Shown here: positions 4,336 to 12,821 of the stretch, in pieces
How positions within the stretch are numbered: position 1 is the first letter of the stretch
Layout of the letters: each line of letters opens with the position of its first letter
Source of the DNA: Geosiphon pyriformis uo1
Lineage: Eukaryota; Fungi; Glomeromycota
DNA length: 64,000 bases
Reading direction: 5' to 3'
NCBI GenBank assembly: GCA_016748015.1
Contig: JAAOMT010000312.1
Span: 17,935 to 81,934, forward strand
Made by a program: the position numbers and the translations under genes
The notes under the pieces: generated by a model
Told to the model about the DNA's origin: nothing
Databases searched by the model: none
The model's input: only the letters and a program-made list of their open reading frames with translations

Positions 4336-7300
4336 AAATATTAAAATTTACGCATAATAATTATTTTTTATTAAAAATCACAATTTATTTTACTATATAA
4401 AATTAAAAGATAAAATTATTTGATATAATTTATTAAGACTTTGTTTTTGCATAATAATTGTATTAAAATCTTCTAAAAGCTGTTTTAGTTTGCTTTTAAA
4501 AATTACATTGTAAATTTTAGAGTAAAAAAAACTATAATATTTTTTAAATTGATTAATTCTTACATTATTTTAAATAAAATAATAATGATATATTTATCAT
4601 AAATATATTGGTAAATATTATAAAAATCAATTTTATACATTTGACTATTAATTAATATACTTTGTTTTAATAATATTTTTAAAATTTGTTTTGATGTGTT
4701 AAGTTTTTTACATTTTGAAATTAGAAGTTGAAAATATTAAATGTAAATAAAAAATAAAGTTTTTTTGTTTTTAAGATATTAAAATTTCGATAAAATAGCA
4801 AAAAAACAATGCTTATATGTAATTTTTTAATTAAAAATAAATAGTATTTTTATACAATTTTCAAGCTGTATTATAATGGTAGTTATATTTTAATTTAAAA
4901 TTTTTCATCAATTGATCTTATAAATTTTTTTTTGGTATTAACAATGAATGATAAAAATTTGTTATGCATCAAAAAAGAATTTTGTTAGCAAATGAAATCA
5001 AACTTTATTATAGAGCATATTAAATTAAAATATATTTCTTCAAATGTTTATTTATTTTTATATGTTTCATAATTGCGTCTATTTCAAGTGGTTCTCCTTG
5101 GAATTTTTATGAGCAGAGGGATAAGTTTGGGTTGAATGTGGATAAATGGGAGATTTAGTGAAATCAGTGGTTAATAAGATTAACATTTACACGTTGGTTT
5201 TTTTTGGAATTTAGAAATGCGATAAATTTTGATAATAGTATTGCCCCTATTACTTTCCGCTAAGACTGTAATTTATTTAAATTTTTGAGAAAATAAATTA
5301 AGTTGCTGGAAAGTTTAGACTTAACAAAAGCATTTCAAATATAGTAAATTACTTACATAATTAACTTTAAGTAATTTTCGATTTTATAATAATTTATATT
5401 ATTCAAATCAAATTTAAATATAAATTCTTATTTAAAAGATATTGGTATTGTTTTTATTTAAAGATATATTCGAATTTAATTTTAGTTTAAAATATGATTT
5501 ATAAATAAATTGGATTAAAATTATACCTTGTAAATATCTTGATTTGATTTTAAATTAACTTCACATTAAAATTAATGATTATTTATGCACTTTAAATTAA
5601 GTTTTAAAAAAAGTTTAATGAACTTTAATTGATTAAATTAAACAATCAGATCCCAAATCAATTCAAACAACAAATAATTGAATAAAATTGGAAAACTACT
5701 TTATATTCTACTTAATGATAAATATAAAAACTATTATGGTAAAGTAGTGTATTATTCTTAGATTCCAAAAGTGTTTAAAAGAAATTCGATATAATTTATT
5801 GTGATTTACATTTGAACAACGTTTTACATAAAAGAAAATACTATTTATAATATATTAATATTTAAACTTTGTAACTATTATATTATTAAAGTTCTTTTAT
5901 AGTAAAAGATTATAAAAAACTCTAATAATATAATAATATGAAAAGATCAACTAACTAATAAAATTAATTTATTAAGAATCATTTAATTCTAATAAGAAAT
6001 AAAAATAATATATTAAACAAAAACATAAATTTAATTAAGAATTTAATTTCTTACTTTTAAGTATATAAACTAATTTTTTTATAAAATTAAATAAAATTTT
6101 AATTTACTGTAATAATAATTATCAATAAAATTATAATAATCACTTAATTTAATTTAATATTATCTATTTAAGTTATTAATTAATAATATCAAGTTTTAAC
6201 AGATAAAAACAATTTTTTTTTCATAATAAATATAATATTCAATAATTTATTATTCTATAAAACCAGTAAAATATATTTATATAATTATATAATTATATTA
6301 TAGAATTTAGATTTTTTAAAAAATTAAAAATAATAATCATATACTATAATTACTAAGATAAATCAAGAAAATAAGAAATAAAATAAATATAACTATAAAT
6401 TTAAGAGACTAATTTACTAATTTTAAAGACTATACCACCAAAAAAAATTAATTAATTTGGTTCTAAAAACATTACAAAAGACAATAATTTTTCTTTAATT
6501 AATAATAATAAAAATTTTGATATCATTTTTATTTACAAAAACTAATTAGCAAGTAAAAAAAGGTATGACTATATTAAAAAACTTAAAATAAATAACAATA
6601 AATTTTAATATAATTTATATTTTTAAGTATATTCTATATGTAAATTTAAAAACCATCGAAAATTTGACAATTTTAAAAATAAAAAAAAACAAAACTAGCA
6701 AGTCTAATTAAAAAATAGCATTTAAAAAAACTTAAAAAGCAAACTTTATATAAAAAAATTTTATATTTTTAATTCTAATTTTGTATTAATAAAACTATAT
6801 ACAAACTAGAAAACAGCTTTATAAAACCAATTTAATTTTAAAAAAAGCATTAAGCATTAAAGTAAAAATTACTTAAAATTTTTTGATAATTAGTAATTGT
6901 TTGCTAAATATTATTAAAAACAATATTATTAAAAAACAAAAAAAAGTAGTTTAAGTTTTTATTTAATTAATTTAATTTTTAAAATCAAATAATTTAATAA
7001 ATTATTAATTAAAAATACATATAAAAACATAATTTGTTTTGTTTTTAAAACTAATAATAATTGATTAAAATATAATATATTAAGTAATTTAAAAAAAATT
7101 GTTTTTTGTTATTTAAACTAATATAAAAAATAATAATAAAAGAAAATAGCTTAACTATTAGTTTATTTTTAAAAGTTTTAAGACTTTTTATAATAATAAT
7201 GAACTAATTTTAATTAGCTTTTTAAAAAAAAAATTATTTAAAATCAAAAATAGTATTTTAGAATCAATAAAAGATTAGTTTACTATTGTTTTACTTAAAT

Positions 7301-8679
7301 AAAATATTTTTATAAAATATTATTAAACATTTTTAATGGTTGTAAGTACTTTATTAATAAAAATAGTATTAAATTTTTAAAAAACAAAAAAATTATAAAA
7401 ATATTAACAAAAAATTAAATAATCTAATATAAAAAAAATTTAAAAGCATATATGTTTAAAAAATTTGTTTAAATTAAAAGTTTTAATAAGTTAAATTAAA
7501 TTAAATTTTGGTTTAATTTAGATTTAATTTGAAAAATATTTTTAAAAAATTTGGTAATTTATAATTTAATTTAACTTGTAAAAATTTTATTTTATATTTT
7601 AATTATTAAAAATTTATTAATAAATAGGCTAAAGAAATAATAAATAATTAATAAAAACATAATTTTATAATTAAAAATACTTATTTATAAAAATTATATT
7701 AGCTTTTTTATTGTTAAATTATTTATAAAAATTTTAAACATATGTTCTTTTTTTTTAATTATAATAACAATAGTGTTTATTTTAGTATTACTATTAAACA
7801 TATTATTTTTAAAAACAAATATATTATTTTGATTATTTGTTATTTTTCAAGTTAAAAAAAACTAAATTAGAATTTAATTTACTTATATAAAAAACTTAAA
7901 AAATTGAGTTAAATTATAAAATTTTGATTTGTATTAATTCCAAATTAAAATATTTATAATTTAAACTTGATTTTTATAAATTAAATATCAAGTCAAAAAA
8001 ATTGATTCAACTTTTTTAAAGCTTTAGTTTAAGTTTAATTAAAAAATAAAATAATTATAATACAGATTATTGTTATTAAACAAAAAAAATTTATAATATT
8101 AAATATTTAAGTTCTCTTTATATTAAGTATAAAAAAGCTAAATTAATAATATAATTATTAAACCAAATATTATGATTTAAATAGTTAAATCATATAATTA
8201 ATAACTTTAAAATTAGGTAAAATCTTATTAAGTTGTTATTCTTAAATAAAATTTTCAAAGCAACTTTATATAATTTTGGCTAAAAGATTTGTGTTAAAAA
8301 ATAAATATAATAAAATATTAAAGATTTTTGGATTTATAAAATTAATTATTAGCAAAATTTTAAAATTTGTAAAATTATTTACAAAAAAATATATAACTGT
8401 TAACTACCAAATATAAAAGAAAGAATTTAATTAAAAAAGCAGATTATATAATAGCCAACTAAAAATTTATCTGAAATCAGTTTTTTCTTAAACGTCTATT
8501 TATTAATTAGTCATATGTTTATTAACGGTAATCTAGTTAGAAATCTAGAATTAGTGTATAGCATTGTCTTGGATTATACATAAAAAAAATACCGTGATTT
8601 GCCGCATAAAAAGACCCGGGGTCTATTACATTTCACCAGATTTGCAATATGGTACGATTGTTTACGTAAAAACTTTTTG

Positions 8680-9030
8680 GTGGCGTGACAGAAATCTAGA
8701 AGGTTTCTGTCATTCAAGTCTAAAAGGCGAGCCACGAAGCTAATGTTAGGGCCCAGGTAATCTAGAAGGTTGTCTGGAGTTCAAGGCTAAAAGCTGACCT
8801 AACCTTGGCCCCACAAGGCACGGCCATCTAGAAGGTGGTCTGACGTTAAGGCAAGAAGCTGAAACTGTGGGATGAATAAAAAGCCAGAGATGTCGGCTGT
8901 TTATCCCAAAAAACGTGGGGTAAATGTATTTGAAGCTGCGGCCGACCACAGGTTGGGCTTCAGGACAATCTTTAGCAATATGCTTTAGGGATATGGCATC
9001 TCCATGGAGCGCTGTCCTGGGCATACAACC
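8680..9030 (+). ncRNA. Candidate structured RNA of unknown family: three tandem three-way-junction units plus a downstream folded domain
   Basis: The loop TCTAGAAGG recurs at 8695, 8761 and 8827, each closed by a different but complementary stem. Many G-U pairs work only on the + strand. The region is GC-rich, retains CpG and has no credible ORF. Confidence 0.7.
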
Positions 9031-10763
9031 GCTTGCACACTTGAAATGATGTCTTAAGACGTAGCATTTGGGGCTATGGAACTGAAACTTATTTCTCTTT
9101 ATTCTTTTCAATTTAAGAAAAAGGTCTCCAAAGCAGTTTGCGATTGGTGGGGGTCCTTACAATAACGAGAGCAGCAGCGATCTCTAAAGGAGCAAAAGAT
9201 GATAGTTATGATGGAGGTGTCATTGGCACAGGTAAGTTGAAGCATGAAAAGAATTTGAGCAGCTTAGAAAGCATTCACTCGGAATGAAAATTTTCTGAAA
9301 CAGGTCAAATGGACTGCTGTTCGCAATGAAAAAAACACGAGAGACTTTCAGAGGTAGATAATAATAAGTTTCATCCAAACTATTATTTCGTCTTATTAAA
9401 CACCGAAAGGCAAGGCTTTGAAGTATTCAGAAATTCGATCATCAGTTTTGTTGTTGAATTGGATCGCCGAGCATCATTAGTTAATTCTGATTACATTATA
9501 TAGAAAAATAAAATCGGCTAGGACACAATATATTGCAGATAGAGGATTGCTTTATTTTAAAACTACCTTTTGCCGTTGATTCCTTCCCAATAAAAAGTCA
9601 ATGTGTTCGCAGAACAACCAAGGAAGAATCTCAAATTCTCAATTTTGCCCCAACAAACTACAATGTAGCCTCTTGACCCTTACCAAATCTTGGTTTACCT
9701 TAATTTTCCAATATGGGGCTGCAATATTAATCTTCCTCATTTACGCCAAAACTTCCTTAGCTCCTAGTATGACCTCAACCCTTTCATCAATTTACCAAGT
9801 CAATTATATCTCAGCTTTCCTCAATGCAATTACTTCTTAACTTCTCGGTCAGGTTTCTCCTCTTTTGACTTCATAAATTACTACCTAAATCTCAATTCGT
9901 TATGTGTCACCCTAGTATATGTCATACTTGTGAAAATCATGGCTAATTTCATATTATACTTTCTAAAAAGTATATGGCCGAAGTGGTAAAGGTGTCTTCA
10001 GCTCAAGTGCTGAAGCAAGCTTAGATGACCGGCAACTCCTCATAAATATGGAAAATAAGTACAAAAAGATGATTTTCAAAGAACAATAAGGTGGTGCCGA
10101 TATGTCATTGGATTAAAGGCTGGCTTTTTCGAAATTTACATTCCTCTCAAAATATACTCATATGCTTCCAATCTTTTGGGTAAAAAATGACTACAAGGAA
10201 ATATATTTTATTACCAAAACTACAGGCCATGAAGAGGCGACTGGGTAATATACGGAGATAAACTTTATAAGAAGTGACCCGAAGCGATCGCAAAAGAAAT
10301 GCCTGGCCTGATAGAAAGTTCCAAACTTATATATGGGACCAACCGACTTGAATTTTAGGGTCATATAATTTATCAATAACTTTATATCGCCAAAGACATT
10401 GAGCCTTAATATTAGTTTAGTTATGGTTAAATAGTTTTAGAATTCTAAATGCACATTTGCTTAAAGTTTATTGGCTTACTTTTTTCTCAACTTTATTGAG
10501 CTATAAAATTTGTCGAGCTTACAGTACACATTTTACAAAGAATTATGCAAGCTTACTCTTTCATACTTTGTTCAGCGTTGATCGGTGTTTCTTGTTTCAC
10601 CTTTTTAGATTTCATTTTTATTTTCAATCGGAATTAGCTCTTTAATTTTGGAGCCAATAGAAAGATTATGGTATTAATAATTGAAAAAGTTAAGATGACG
10701 ATATTTATAATTAAAATAAGCTCTATACGCAAATAGGAAAATCTATTCAAGCATTTGATTTAT

Positions 10764-11415
10764 TCACGATGGATTCTCCTCAGCAATAGAATCAGCGGGC
10801 ACAACACCTTGGTTTTCAGTAAGACTTCCTTCAACTATATAAGTATAAGGACCAGTCTTTCGTTTTGGGGTTACCTCATAGGCAAGAAAAAGATTACATC
10901 GGGGACAATGAAGCCTGTATTGTTTCTCAAACGCTTGAGGTCTACAAAATAACGAAATTATCATTTCAAAAGCAAGTTTAATTTTAAATTTTGCAAGATC
11001 AAATTGTATAAAGAAAATATGTATATATGTACCTTTGCAGAACTATTGGATTGTTCGAAGGTTCAATGGCGTTCAGTTTATAGATTCTCTTACCATTTGC
11101 GATGATATAAGCATTATCTGTTTTTCGCCTTGGTAATCGATCTAATTTTGCATCTTGGTAAGATTGGACAAAGATCCGGAATTATAGTTTTTTAAAAATA
11201 AAATTCTTTGAAGTTAATTTTTGAACTCATCATATTGGCAGCAAACAGTACAGATATAACTCAAAATCCTTTACTCTGATAAAATTTTATATCATATTAC
11301 CAATGACCAGAATAAATTCACTACACAAGCAATAATAAACGTGTAGATGCTGTTCTGGACGTGCATTAATTTGTTCTGAGGAAGAGACTGTTGAACTTGA
11401 TACGATTTTGGGCAT
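10764..11415 (-). CDS. STEEP1: STEEP1/CXorf56 (UPF0428) homologue, 137 aa; exons 11415-11301, 11153-11033, 10941-10764
   Basis: Spliced GT-AG translation MPKIVSSSTVSSSEQ...LHVYYCLCSEFILVIDAKLDRLPRRKTDNAYII...RPQAFEKQYRLHCPRCNLFLAY...YIVEGSL matches the recalled family motifs (MPKVVS, LHVYYCLC, LPxR, ExQYRxxCxxC). Exon lengths sum to 414 nt in frame. Confidence 0.9.
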
Positions 11416-11586
11416 TTTTTTTGATTTGTAAGATACAAAATTGTTGGCAAGGTGCTCACTGGATGATATATTATATATGCAACGAACGCGCCACAACGGG
11501 CTATAACGCGCCACATTCAAACCACTGGCCAAAGCTGTTGATATTTTGGCACTCACTTTCAGCATATTCCTAGAATTATTTCGATA
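11416..11586. promoter_or_regulatory. Bidirectional promoter between STEEP1 and UBC9 with two AACGCGCCACA direct repeats (11485-11495, 11505-11515)
   Basis: Only 171 nt separate the two divergent ATGs. An exact 11-mer is repeated with 20-nt spacing, and a TATA-like run lies at ~11466-11478. Confidence 0.7.
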
Positions 11587-12821
11587 ATGTCAGGCATCTG
11601 TAGAGCAAGACTTACTGAAGAACGGAAACAGTGGAGAAAAGACCATCCCTATGTAGGCTCACCTGTCGGTCATCTATTTTTTAGAACGATTAATTGATCA
11701 AAAAGTTTTCCACTTTTCCCTATTGGTAGGGGTTTTATGCTCGCCCTACTAAGACTGAGAATGGCCTGGACTTGATGAACTGGGAAGTTGGAATACCTGG
11801 GAAGTTAGGAGTATGTATTTTCTCCTTGACAACCTTGTCTTTTTACAAAGGAGAATCATCAATGGCATAAAATTATATATTACTCTTTACTTATTTTTTC
11901 TGAGTGAATATCTTCATCTATTCTTATTTACGGAAAGTATACTCTTTTCATTTTTCTGTGATTAATCAGACACCCTGGGAAGGAGGTGTTTACAAAATTC
12001 ACATGATCTTCCCTGAAGGTAAAATCATGTACATATTTTTCTTTTGGGCTACATACTCTTCATTCCGGGACTTCATCCTATTCTCGCTTTAAACCTTTTA
12101 AATCTTTTTCAGATTATCCTAGCAAACCACCAAAATGTAAGGGCTATTATGTAGTGTTATCATTTCTTCTCATTATTATCTAAAATTACTTTTTCTTTTT
12201 TTTTCGTTTGAAAATTAGGTAAATTTACACCTCCTCTTTTTCATCCTAACGTCTACCCATCTGGTACCGTATGCCTTTCAATTCTGAACGAAGAAGAGGC
12301 CTGGAAGCCTGCTATCACAATCAAACAGGTAAATAAATGCTTTATGCTTTTCGGATTCCTAATCAAACAGCCGTCAAATCCATAATGATTATTTTCGCTG
12401 ACAATATCACGTAATGGCAAATGAAGCTTTTACTTGCCAGGATGAGATATTGTCAGCGAGTTCCTTCCCGTTATTGAGTGTAATTGGACATCATGATTTA
12501 CAAGATATCATAACTGACTACTCAGTTTCAATGACATGATATACTGGGACGGAGGCGGTTGTTGATGGTTCCGAAATTGTCCGATACTAACTTTTACTCT
12601 TAGATATTATTGGGCATCCAAGATTTGCTCAATGATCCAAATCCTGATAGTCCGGCCCAATCCGATGCATACATGCTATACAAGTGGGTTTCTATTATAT
12701 TTTTATATCTAATTTGATAATAAGCTATTCATTGATCTCTATTTTACTCACTTCTAGAAAAGATCGTAAAGAATACGAGCTGAGGGTTAGGAGAATAGCA
12801 AAGGAAAATGCACCCCAATAG
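11587..12821 (+). CDS. UBC9: SUMO-conjugating enzyme Ubc9, 157 aa; exons 11587-11652, 11730-11810, 11970-12018, 12113-12136, 12219-12328, 12604-12683, 12758-12821
   Basis: Spliced translation [28 protein letters not shown]...[16 protein letters not shown]...[64 protein letters not shown]. The WRKDHP and [15 protein letters not shown] motifs are diagnostic. All introns are GT-AG and the exons total 474 nt. Confidence 0.97.
12349..12576 (+). ncRNA. Candidate intronic structured RNA (snoRNA-like or regulatory fold) in UBC9 intron 5
   Basis: Perfect 14-bp inverted repeat 12395-12408/12446-12459. Closing stems at 12349-12355/12570-12576 and 12368-12375/12554-12561. The intron is 275 nt versus 74-159 nt for the other introns. 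Confidence 0.55.

Follow-up and report, generated by a model that had tools for sequence, protein, structure and literature searches.

Tandem three-way-junction RNA modules with gene-specific pentaloops in Geosiphon pyriformis and other arbuscular-mycorrhizal fungi

The array in the window and its transcript

The window analysed here is a 64,000-nucleotide (nt) stretch of the Geosiphon pyriformis uo1 genome (assembly GCA_016748015.1, contig JAAOMT010000312.1, positions 17,935 to 81,934), and it carries on its plus strand, at positions 8680-8871, three head-to-tail units of 66 nt. We found that this array belongs to a family of structured RNA modules that recurs in its own genome and in related fungi. 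The sequence TCTAGAAGG starts at 8695, 8761 and 8827, which gives a period of exactly 66 nt, and 29 columns are identical across all three units. Each unit is composed of a helix P1, a long hairpin P2, the strand UCAA, a 3-bp hairpin P3, the dinucleotide GA and the closing strand P1'. The sequence, the loop positions and the period had been described before by a reader who saw the letters of the DNA only (the sequence-only reading), and they read as claimed. The features of the array, all on the plus strand, are as follows.

8680..8735, plus strand: unit 1, with P1 GUGGC/GCCAC; fold z -5.8
8685-8713, plus strand: P2 of unit 1, with the pentaloop UAGAA at 8697-8701
8714-8717 and 8729-8730, plus strand: junctions UCAA and GA of unit 1
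8718-8728, plus strand: P3 of unit 1, with the loop UAAAA at 8721-8725
8737..8809, plus strand: unit 2, with P1 GUUAGG/CCUAAC (8745-8750 paired with 8798-8803)
8737-8741 with 8805-8809, plus strand: outer helix GCUAA/UUGGC of unit 2, which extends P1
8763-8767 and 8788-8792, plus strand: P2 pentaloop UAGAA and P3 loop UAAAA of unit 2
8810..8871, plus strand: unit 3, with P1 CCCACA/UGUGGG; fold z -2.7
8829-8833 and 8853-8857, plus strand: P2 pentaloop UAGAA and P3 loop AAGAA of unit 3

Free-energy folding reproduced the three-way junction that had been drawn for every unit, at -23.1 kcal/mol (z -5.8) for unit 1 and, with corrected boundaries, at -17.4 kcal/mol (z -1.5) for unit 2 and -21.5 kcal/mol (z -2.7) for unit 3, in which the junction strand is longer (GAAAC). 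On the plus strand, the 200-nt array formed three closed three-way junctions with a free energy of -73.5 kcal/mol (z -4.0), and 0 of 200 shuffled sequences folded as well, whereas the minus strand (z -0.45) gave no comparable fold; the plus strand, which had been assigned from G-U pairs, is therefore confirmed. The array is held by an island at about 8560-9100 with a guanine-cytosine (GC) content of 45-48%, compared with 8-14% in the upstream intergenic DNA and about 35% in the downstream coding DNA, and the island as a whole folds stably (z -3.1). The array was missed by Tandem Repeats Finder, owing to the divergence of its stems. To call these stems fully diverged, as had been done, is an overstatement: P1 does differ from unit to unit, but the units have stretches of the P2 3' strand in common. 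The shared loop is real, but the supposed 9-nt loop is the 5-nt loop UAGAA closed by a C-G and a U.G pair. The junction, written before as UYAA/GA, keeps its GA and is refined to UCAA from 55-67 related units, and P2 begins right after P1 with a conserved G.U pair.

To compare the array with known RNAs, we ran cmscan with permissive filters against Rfam 15 and obtained 0 matches at E <= 1 in window positions 6000-12000 and in four paralogous loci, in line with the failure of the sequence-only reading to recognise a known RNA. ARAGORN predicted 0 tRNA genes at window positions 8000-9600; the loops of the array have 5 nt, D and T arms are absent, and UUCAA, which resembles a T-loop sequence, is a junction strand here. 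The type III hammerhead, the Alu domain of the signal recognition particle (SRP) and the flavivirus exonuclease-resistant RNAs (xrRNAs) share with the array the order P1, hairpin, junction, hairpin, P1' within 55-75 nt, and xrRNAs and Alu arms are tandem as well. However, no Rfam model of a three-way-junction RNA matched at the above threshold and the junction of the array is 0/UCAA/GA; the SRP Alu loops pair with each other, whereas those of the array are identical and not complementary. A type III hammerhead ribozyme was rejected as an identity, as the units lack the core CUGANGA ... GAAA, have junction strands of 0 nt, UCAA and GA, and gave no match in Rfam; the CUGAUG of some units is followed by UUCAA, not by GA plus stem II. 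Telomerase RNA was rejected too, the CCUAAC/GUUAGG of unit 2 being simply its P1, which covaries in paralogues (GGUAGG/CCUGCC).

The array is transcribed from the plus strand, as had been predicted: spliced plus-strand contigs from two public runs cover it. We took these runs as RNA on the grounds that their contigs are spliced at GT..AG and also cover a neighbouring UBC9-like gene. The transcript and the DNA around it have the following parts.

8600..8951, plus strand: exon 1 of the spliced transcript, with the whole array inside (RNA-derived contigs X2 #9, 8600-8951, and X3 #14, 8687-8949, joined to 9116)
8952..9117, plus strand: intron 1, GT..AG, 166 nt (joint 8949>9116, cut +2, in X3 and X2)
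9118..9231, plus strand: exon 2, a degenerate homologue of the family's exon 2 (xRPDRQxAKDW...), with stops in every frame
9304-9409, 9504-10090 and 10198 to at least 10404, plus strand: later exons, from RNA contigs
9232-9303 (GT..AG), 9410-9503 (GC..AG) and 10091-10197 (GT..AG), plus strand: later introns, with their splice dinucleotides
8890..9080, plus strand: about 190 nt rich in GC, which the sister copy L003 lacks, with no other copy found by BLAST of the window's genome

The 5' end of the transcript lies at or before about 8600, RNA contigs covering nothing in 7500-8600, and an unspliced X2 contig (8922-9145) is also present. No open reading frame (ORF) of more than 59 aa spans the array, which has stops in all three frames; the longest ORF of the spliced RNA has about 79 aa, and tblastn found no similarity of the transcript to the family proteins beyond the array. 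The k-mer depth of the transcript contig was 141, compared with 44 for that of the UBC9-like gene, contig depth being a poor measure of expression.

Parts of this transcript can be traced to a protein-coding gene. In intact relatives the array lies in intron 1, between an exon encoding KYFxRKxxxWNIxxFLNEC... and one encoding xRPDRQxAKDW..., and the window copy does not lie so. Upstream of 8680 the family's exon 1 is gone except for a faint remnant near 8627-8692 (tblastn E 0.008). The intron-1 acceptor appears to be that of the family, because the exon-2 homologue begins directly after it, and the 5' splice site in use (GT at 8952) is supplied by the GC-rich stretch, which gave the donor that turned the array exonic. 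In the array the window is 85% identical to the paralogous locus L002 over 205 nt, with unalignable flanks, and in unit 1 it is 93% identical to L003, with 75% identity and many gaps downstream. The window copy is thus a derived, 5'-truncated and pseudogenised family member whose array has shifted from intron to exon, that is, a decayed gene whose RNA element survives and is transcribed. It had been taken for a stand-alone non-coding RNA (ncRNA) gene next to STEEP1-UBC9; it is instead one copy of a family of about 39 loci that normally sits in intron 1 of protein-coding genes. For genome scans this means that what looks like a solitary ncRNA island can be a still-expressed RNA remnant of a gene that has otherwise decayed.

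The RNA family and selection on its structure

BLAST of the window island against its own genome gave four further arrays, and a covariance model built from 27 units (R1) found there, at E <= 0.01, at least 73 units at about 39 loci or more, the loci being grouped by hand; the census is a lower bound, since 150 of 18,652 candidates were scored. With R1 the window units scored 71.3 (unit 2, the best), 68.3 and 34.3 bits (unit 3). An array has from one to four or more units, mostly two or three, and numerous loci are decayed pseudogenes. In the consensus unit, a P1 of 5-12 bp sits directly on a P2 of about 12 bp, which often has one bulged nucleotide in its 3' strand; P3 has 3 bp, P2 and P3 are each tipped by a C-G-closed pentaloop, and the junctions are UCAA and GA. 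The window array has this order of parts, both kinds of C-G-closed pentaloop and the tandem period of about 66 nt. Within the unit, conservation is highest in the junction, with U, U, C, A and A at 93, 96, 76, 98 and 96% and GA at 82 and 96%. The sequence-only reading had suggested a kink-turn-like junction, a motif defined by a 3-nt bulge and then tandem sheared G.A/A.G pairs beside a canonical stem; on the P1 5' strand there is no bulge plus GA to match the conserved GA before P1', as P2 follows P1 directly.

Next to these results, several loci illustrate how arrays change. L009 (C701:1147672-1147813, minus strand) and L043 (C701:1151824-1152033, plus strand) lie about 4 kb apart on opposite strands and are near-identical downstream of the array; with 2 units in one and 3 in the other, they exemplify unit gain or loss by unequal exchange. 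At L039 (C737:575573-575864) the array itself is tandemly duplicated, with at least 4 full units and a partial one, and a second module of the unit-1 type lies mid-array. Other copies (L016, L021, L067, L069, L072, L074 and L013:55-129) have decayed to 13-22% GC and are still alignable to the array or to exon 1; it looks as if silenced copies lose G and C systematically, by a decay of the C-to-T type.

To evaluate pairing across the family, we used two alignments. In the MAFFT alignment A3, 82.4% of the cells were standard pairs, compared with 28-44% when the 3' partner was slid, 17 of 21 pairs had changed on both sides, and the covariation score was 0.469 against 0.261 in shuffled alignments, 0 of 500 of which scored as high. 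In the model-fitted alignment A4 (55 units), the standard pairs made up 82.7% (31-45% when slid), both-sided change was seen in 19 of 21 pairs with all three helices supported, and the score was 0.525 against 0.301, again with 0 of 500 shuffles as high. A4 leans towards the structure of the model, and A3, which is not fitted to structure, gives the same answer. In addition, G.U or U.G occupied 201 cells and A.C or C.A 59, and the first P2 pair was G.U in 39 of 54 units. The excess of G.U together with the conserved G.U pair indicates that the structure is selected on the sense RNA strand and not in duplex DNA. These results show that selection acts on the three helices and the junction of the sense RNA, and the covariation that the sequence-only reading had claimed from three units holds across the family.

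The same data bear on the idea of a DNA-level iteron array, comparable to plasmid or geminivirus iterons, in which the repeated 7-mers C-NNNNN-G, 24-25 and 41-42 bp apart, would be bound on double-stranded or extruded DNA by a DNA-binding or nuclease protein such as the family's own product. The C-terminal domain modelled for one family member does resemble restriction-endonuclease folds (DrdV Z 10.4, BpuSI Z 9.6), and the motif is gene-specific and directly repeated 4-6 times. However, the preference for G.U over A.C (201 to 59), the conserved G.U pair and the good fold on the sense strand only point to RNA; compensatory changes in three helices are needless for a site in double-stranded DNA, and the motif always falls exactly in a hairpin loop. 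We consider iterons quite improbable.

Intron 1 of the host genes and their proteins

The exon-1 peptide, with the consensus ...KYFxRKxxxWNIxxFLNECxxEPFxxKIDxYLKSLExI...LLDRYxK, had 19 tblastn matches in the genome. At the loci the order is the exon-1 peptide, a donor, a spacer of about 30 nt, an array of 2-3 units, about 80 nt with a branch point of the TACTAAT type, an acceptor and the exon xRPDRQ(I/L)AKDW.... The deposited model P0001 joins ...LLFDRYRK|DTRPDRQIAKDWDK... and so removes a 292-nt intron that bears the array. This arrangement speaks against reading the array as a translational recoding signal (a stimulator of -1 frameshifting or readthrough where the exon-1 ORF ends) or as a 22-residue coding repeat. 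The heptamers G_UUU_UUA (L004) and G_UUA_AAG (L002) do occur in the exon-1 frame 4-7 nt upstream of the array, a period of 66 nt corresponds to 22 codons, and some database ORFs run into the array. Against this, a canonical donor, branch point (TACTAAT) and acceptor flank the array, the deposited annotation splices it out, units differ in length (65, 67 and 69 nt in L004), not always by whole codons, the window array has stops in all three frames, the heptamers are not conserved, and substitutions track base pairing, not codons. A recoding or coding role is thus very improbable indeed. Beside this, the models or ORF calls of P0088, P0016 and the short entries P0002, P0012, P0020, P0026, P0037, P0055 and P0065 translate through the array, giving peptides like ...WWRGRDLQDLCHSSL..., and such peptides are annotation artefacts. 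For annotators, the array can serve as a marker of intron 1, a stretch that present gene models often include in the coding sequence.

Intron 1 is about 290-350 nt long and lies mostly within closed helices. About two thirds of the members, in several genera, have a GC donor (G|GCAAGU) rather than GU, as read by eye; L004, L011, L013, L035, L063, L080, L081, L083, L084, L085 and L086 are examples. The share of GC donors in the family is far above the usual share of GC-AG introns, which suggests that the intron-1 donor, a weak splice site that is conserved, is deliberately so. Intron length and donor also favour a purely architectural role in splicing, in which the modules would compact a long intron 1 and bring the weak GC donor near the branch point with no specific reader; 'zipper' structures at the ends of yeast introns are known (PMC12350175). 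For compaction, however, neither a near-invariant junction (U, UCAA and GA at 76-98%) nor C-G-closed pentaloops of fixed size nor identical P2 and P3 loops are needed, and the window array is exonic and yet still conserved. We regard this explanation as improbable.

To determine the range of the family, we searched 1.84 billion proteins with a profile of the exon-1 domain and obtained 370 cluster representatives at E <= 1e-3. The named matches come from Rhizophagus irregularis, R. clarus, Funneliformis caledonium, Diversispora eburnea, Gigaspora rosea (assembly accession in PMC7732545), Dentiscutata heterogama, D. erythropus and Scutellospora calospora. In 8 of 8 homologues from seven other Glomeromycotina species (Gigaspora, two species of Rhizophagus, Dentiscutata, Diversispora and Funneliformis) the array follows exon 1 directly. 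The array family occurs in the orders Archaeosporales, Diversisporales and Glomerales. These orders split hundreds of millions of years ago. Literature searches on Rhizophagus or Glomeromycotina together with three-way junctions, covariation or intron structure turned up no description of the array, which represents a previously undescribed structured RNA family specific to arbuscular-mycorrhizal fungi and deeply conserved across three orders of Glomeromycotina. To our knowledge, almost no RNA biology has been worked out for this group.

The host proteins are as unfamiliar as the RNA: Pfam found no domain in six full-length family proteins or in single exons. The AlphaFold (AF2) model of P0142 is confident at residues 1-84 and 211-550, with a predicted local distance difference test score (pLDDT) of about 85-93 in 211-550. 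When its C-terminal domain was compared with known structures (VIA-align), it matched mitoribosomal chains at Z 11.5, which we take to be mL37-type, degenerate endonuclease-like-fold proteins, the DrdV nuclease at Z 10.4 (rmsd 3.0 A over 140 residues) and BpuSI at Z 9.6, while the Foldseek E-values of these matches are weak (>= 0.014). A GRKxD...E...K core occurs in 19 full-length members, and in comparison with the PD-(D/E)XK motif GRKxD is kept and the ExK part is variable. The C-terminal domain, modelled in one member, is thus probably restriction-endonuclease-like, and the RNA family appears to be tied to a large unannotated gene family with such a domain. The N-terminal domain is modelled as four helices; its best fold match, an L27 domain, is uninformative, and this assignment was dropped because Z 5.5 is too low for any assignment. 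For the 156-aa C-terminal exon of one Geosiphon member, the genome gave only three further matches. In the second genes of D. eburnea and F. caledonium (P0070 and P0088) the C-termini are unrelated, P0070 being closest to P0128, and P0088 to P0142 and P0093. At the level of sequence, this fits different C-termini behind a common N-terminal module.

Pentaloops and a candidate binding platform

The pentaloop had been reported as invariant, which holds only within the gene lineage of the window. Other family members carry other loops, and the pentaloops observed were UAGAA, UCUAA, UCUUC, UGCUG, CGCUC, UACUC, UGUUA, UUCGA and AAYUA. Within a unit, the P2 and P3 pentaloops shared 3.1 of 4 variable positions, compared with 1.3 between clades. 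With one unit taken from each of 18 clades, which were assigned by eye from sequence similarity, 56 of 72 positions were identical, compared with 27 +/- 4.1 after permutation, and 0 of 20000 permutations reached this number. The loops of other species are as follows.

Funneliformis caledonium: four loops of UUCGA
Rhizophagus irregularis: three loops of UGCUA, and UGUUA
Diversispora eburnea gene 1: unit 1 with UUUUA/UUUUA, unit 2 with UUCUA/UUCUA
D. eburnea gene 2 and F. caledonium gene 2: UC[AAYUA]GU in both genes

The two genes with UC[AAYUA]GU tips have the most similar N-domains of the set (64.6% identity). An unusual tip shared by genes with the most similar N-domains and unrelated C-termini indicates that the N-terminal exon and the array travel together. 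The P2 and P3 loops thus covary, as aligned, by identity and not by complementarity. Short-tract gene conversion is an unlikely source of this identity because the sequences flanking the two loops are non-homologous. The simplest reading is one reader of both loops, with a specificity that differs between gene lineages; covariation by identity that differs between paralogues points to a recognition code. The variability of the loops speaks against a common ligand and hence against the tandem aptamer proposed earlier. Two further uses of the loops were rejected. Pairing with a nearby antisense target was searched for as exact 7-9-mer complements in 10 kb around five loci, and gave one isolated match (at the end of exon 2 of L010) that was not reproduced. 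Kissing-loop dimerisation through the palindrome UCUAGA was rejected as a family feature, since the palindrome occurs only in the lineage of the window, L002 and L003 and other loops are non-palindromic in the loop table, made by eye.

The question of who reads the loops divides two kinds of function. The array might be a trans-acting stable RNA, excised or retained, that acts away from the gene as a sponge or scaffold for a general RNA-binding factor, with the host gene as a mere carrier, like intronic snoRNAs. The window copy is expressed without coding capacity and at high contig depth, arrays are far better conserved than their flanks in pseudogenised loci, closed P1 helices would shield the units from exonucleases, and an analogous module lies in the intron of an unrelated gene. 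However, a general factor should fix the loops, and they differ between genes and are the same within a gene; the array is strictly linked to one N-terminal exon across the three sampled orders, and processing signals or discrete small-RNA ends are not known for it. We therefore think this explanation rather unlikely.

The reading that we favour, tentatively and with a little less than even confidence, is that the array may be a multivalent, gene-specific protein-binding platform. The constant three-way junction would serve as the scaffold, with P1 stacked on the 12-bp P2 and P3 branching from the near-invariant core (G.U/UCAA/GA). Recognition would fall to the two identical gene-specific pentaloops of each module, 4-6 per array. 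The partner, bound in several copies or as an oligomer, would be one whose specificity is inherited along with the gene, most likely the product of the array's own gene. Such binding might in turn feed back on how the weak intron 1 is spliced out, or on what becomes of RNA that still contains it. The window RNA, which keeps its array in an ORF-less spliced transcript, might be a free copy of the platform that serves as decoy or scaffold. Of the functions that the sequence-only reading had listed for an undescribed multivalent ncRNA, a scaffold or sponge is still the best guess, while a ribozyme or a small-molecule aptamer is without support.

Several points weigh against this platform. The modelled N-domain had no informative fold match (best Z 5.5) that would indicate RNA binding. 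All three copies with UAGAA loops (window, L002 and L003) look pseudogenised, with no intact cognate protein found in the genome. Splicing of intron 1 in intact paralogues is predicted from one deposited gene model and from sequence signals, the contig depth noted above says little about expression, gene conversion among units could add to the uniformity of loops within a gene, and an analogous twin-tip module in another, unrelated gene's intron is more what one would expect of a general reader than of a gene-specific one.

Known systems offer partial likenesses to such a platform. The U1A polyadenylation-inhibition element and the RPL30 and RPS14B operators are likewise cis RNA structures in the pre-mRNA of their own regulator; the U1A element has two copies of the same loop sequence for two protein molecules, as with the twin loops here, and the yeast RPL30 and RPS14B elements lie at or near an intron and control its splicing, the array being intronic as well. 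However, these elements are single hairpins or internal loops with a binding protein and with a loop fixed by a universal primary target (U1 snRNA or rRNA), whereas the array consists of tandem three-way junctions with no known protein and with loops that differ between paralogues. The multivalent hairpin-loop sponges CsrB/RsmZ (GGA loops) and ToxI, the antitoxin RNA of type III toxin-antitoxin systems, also consist of tandem small structured units, each binding one protein. In ToxI, cognate-specific repeats lie beside the gene of the nuclease that they neutralise, while the array lies inside the gene of a protein that is restriction-endonuclease-like in its model. The three RNAs are bacterial and have units of 36 nt or simple hairpins, whereas the array sits in introns of a eukaryote; ToxI folds into pseudoknots and is cleaved by its toxin, and for the array nothing shows toxicity, RNA cleavage or inhibition. 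Conserved structures in fungal introns have been surveyed (PMC8216456).

A more specific form of the platform, which we consider unlikely, is that the array might be the RNA half of a cognate RNA-protein pair. It would display 4-6 copies of the gene's own pentaloop 'address', read by the gene's own endonuclease-like protein, and would work either as a self-marking or neutralising RNA or as a paralogue-insulated autoregulatory code. As a self-marking or neutralising RNA it could be a eukaryotic, intron-borne counterpart to the RNA repeats of type III toxin-antitoxin pairs. If the array is such an RNA half, orphan arrays, the long ncRNA of the window among them, might persist as free antidote or decoy copies, and the second twin-tip module would point to a general programmable 'twin-loop display' class of RNA in Glomeromycotina.

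This second module (C637:722601-722701; L089:1480-1625) lies in the intron of a gene unrelated to the family and is built of two three-way junctions that bear four identical tips CGGUUGUCGGUCG, spaced by 25, 42 and 25 nt as in the array family. It differs from the family in its host gene, in its longer tips and in having no UCAA/GA junction, and it is absent from the own-genome matches of R1 among the 150 of 18,652 candidates scored. No complement of the CGGUUGUCGGUCG tip was found within 1.5 kb of the module. It may be a distant relative of the array family or a convergent design; if it is related, twin-loop display modules would be a wider class in the G. pyriformis genome.

Two neighbouring genes of the window show no link to the array in the same RNA-derived contigs.

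10675-11301, minus strand: spliced gene with CT..AC joints
11652-12758, plus strand: the UBC9-like gene, with at least 5 GT..AG introns

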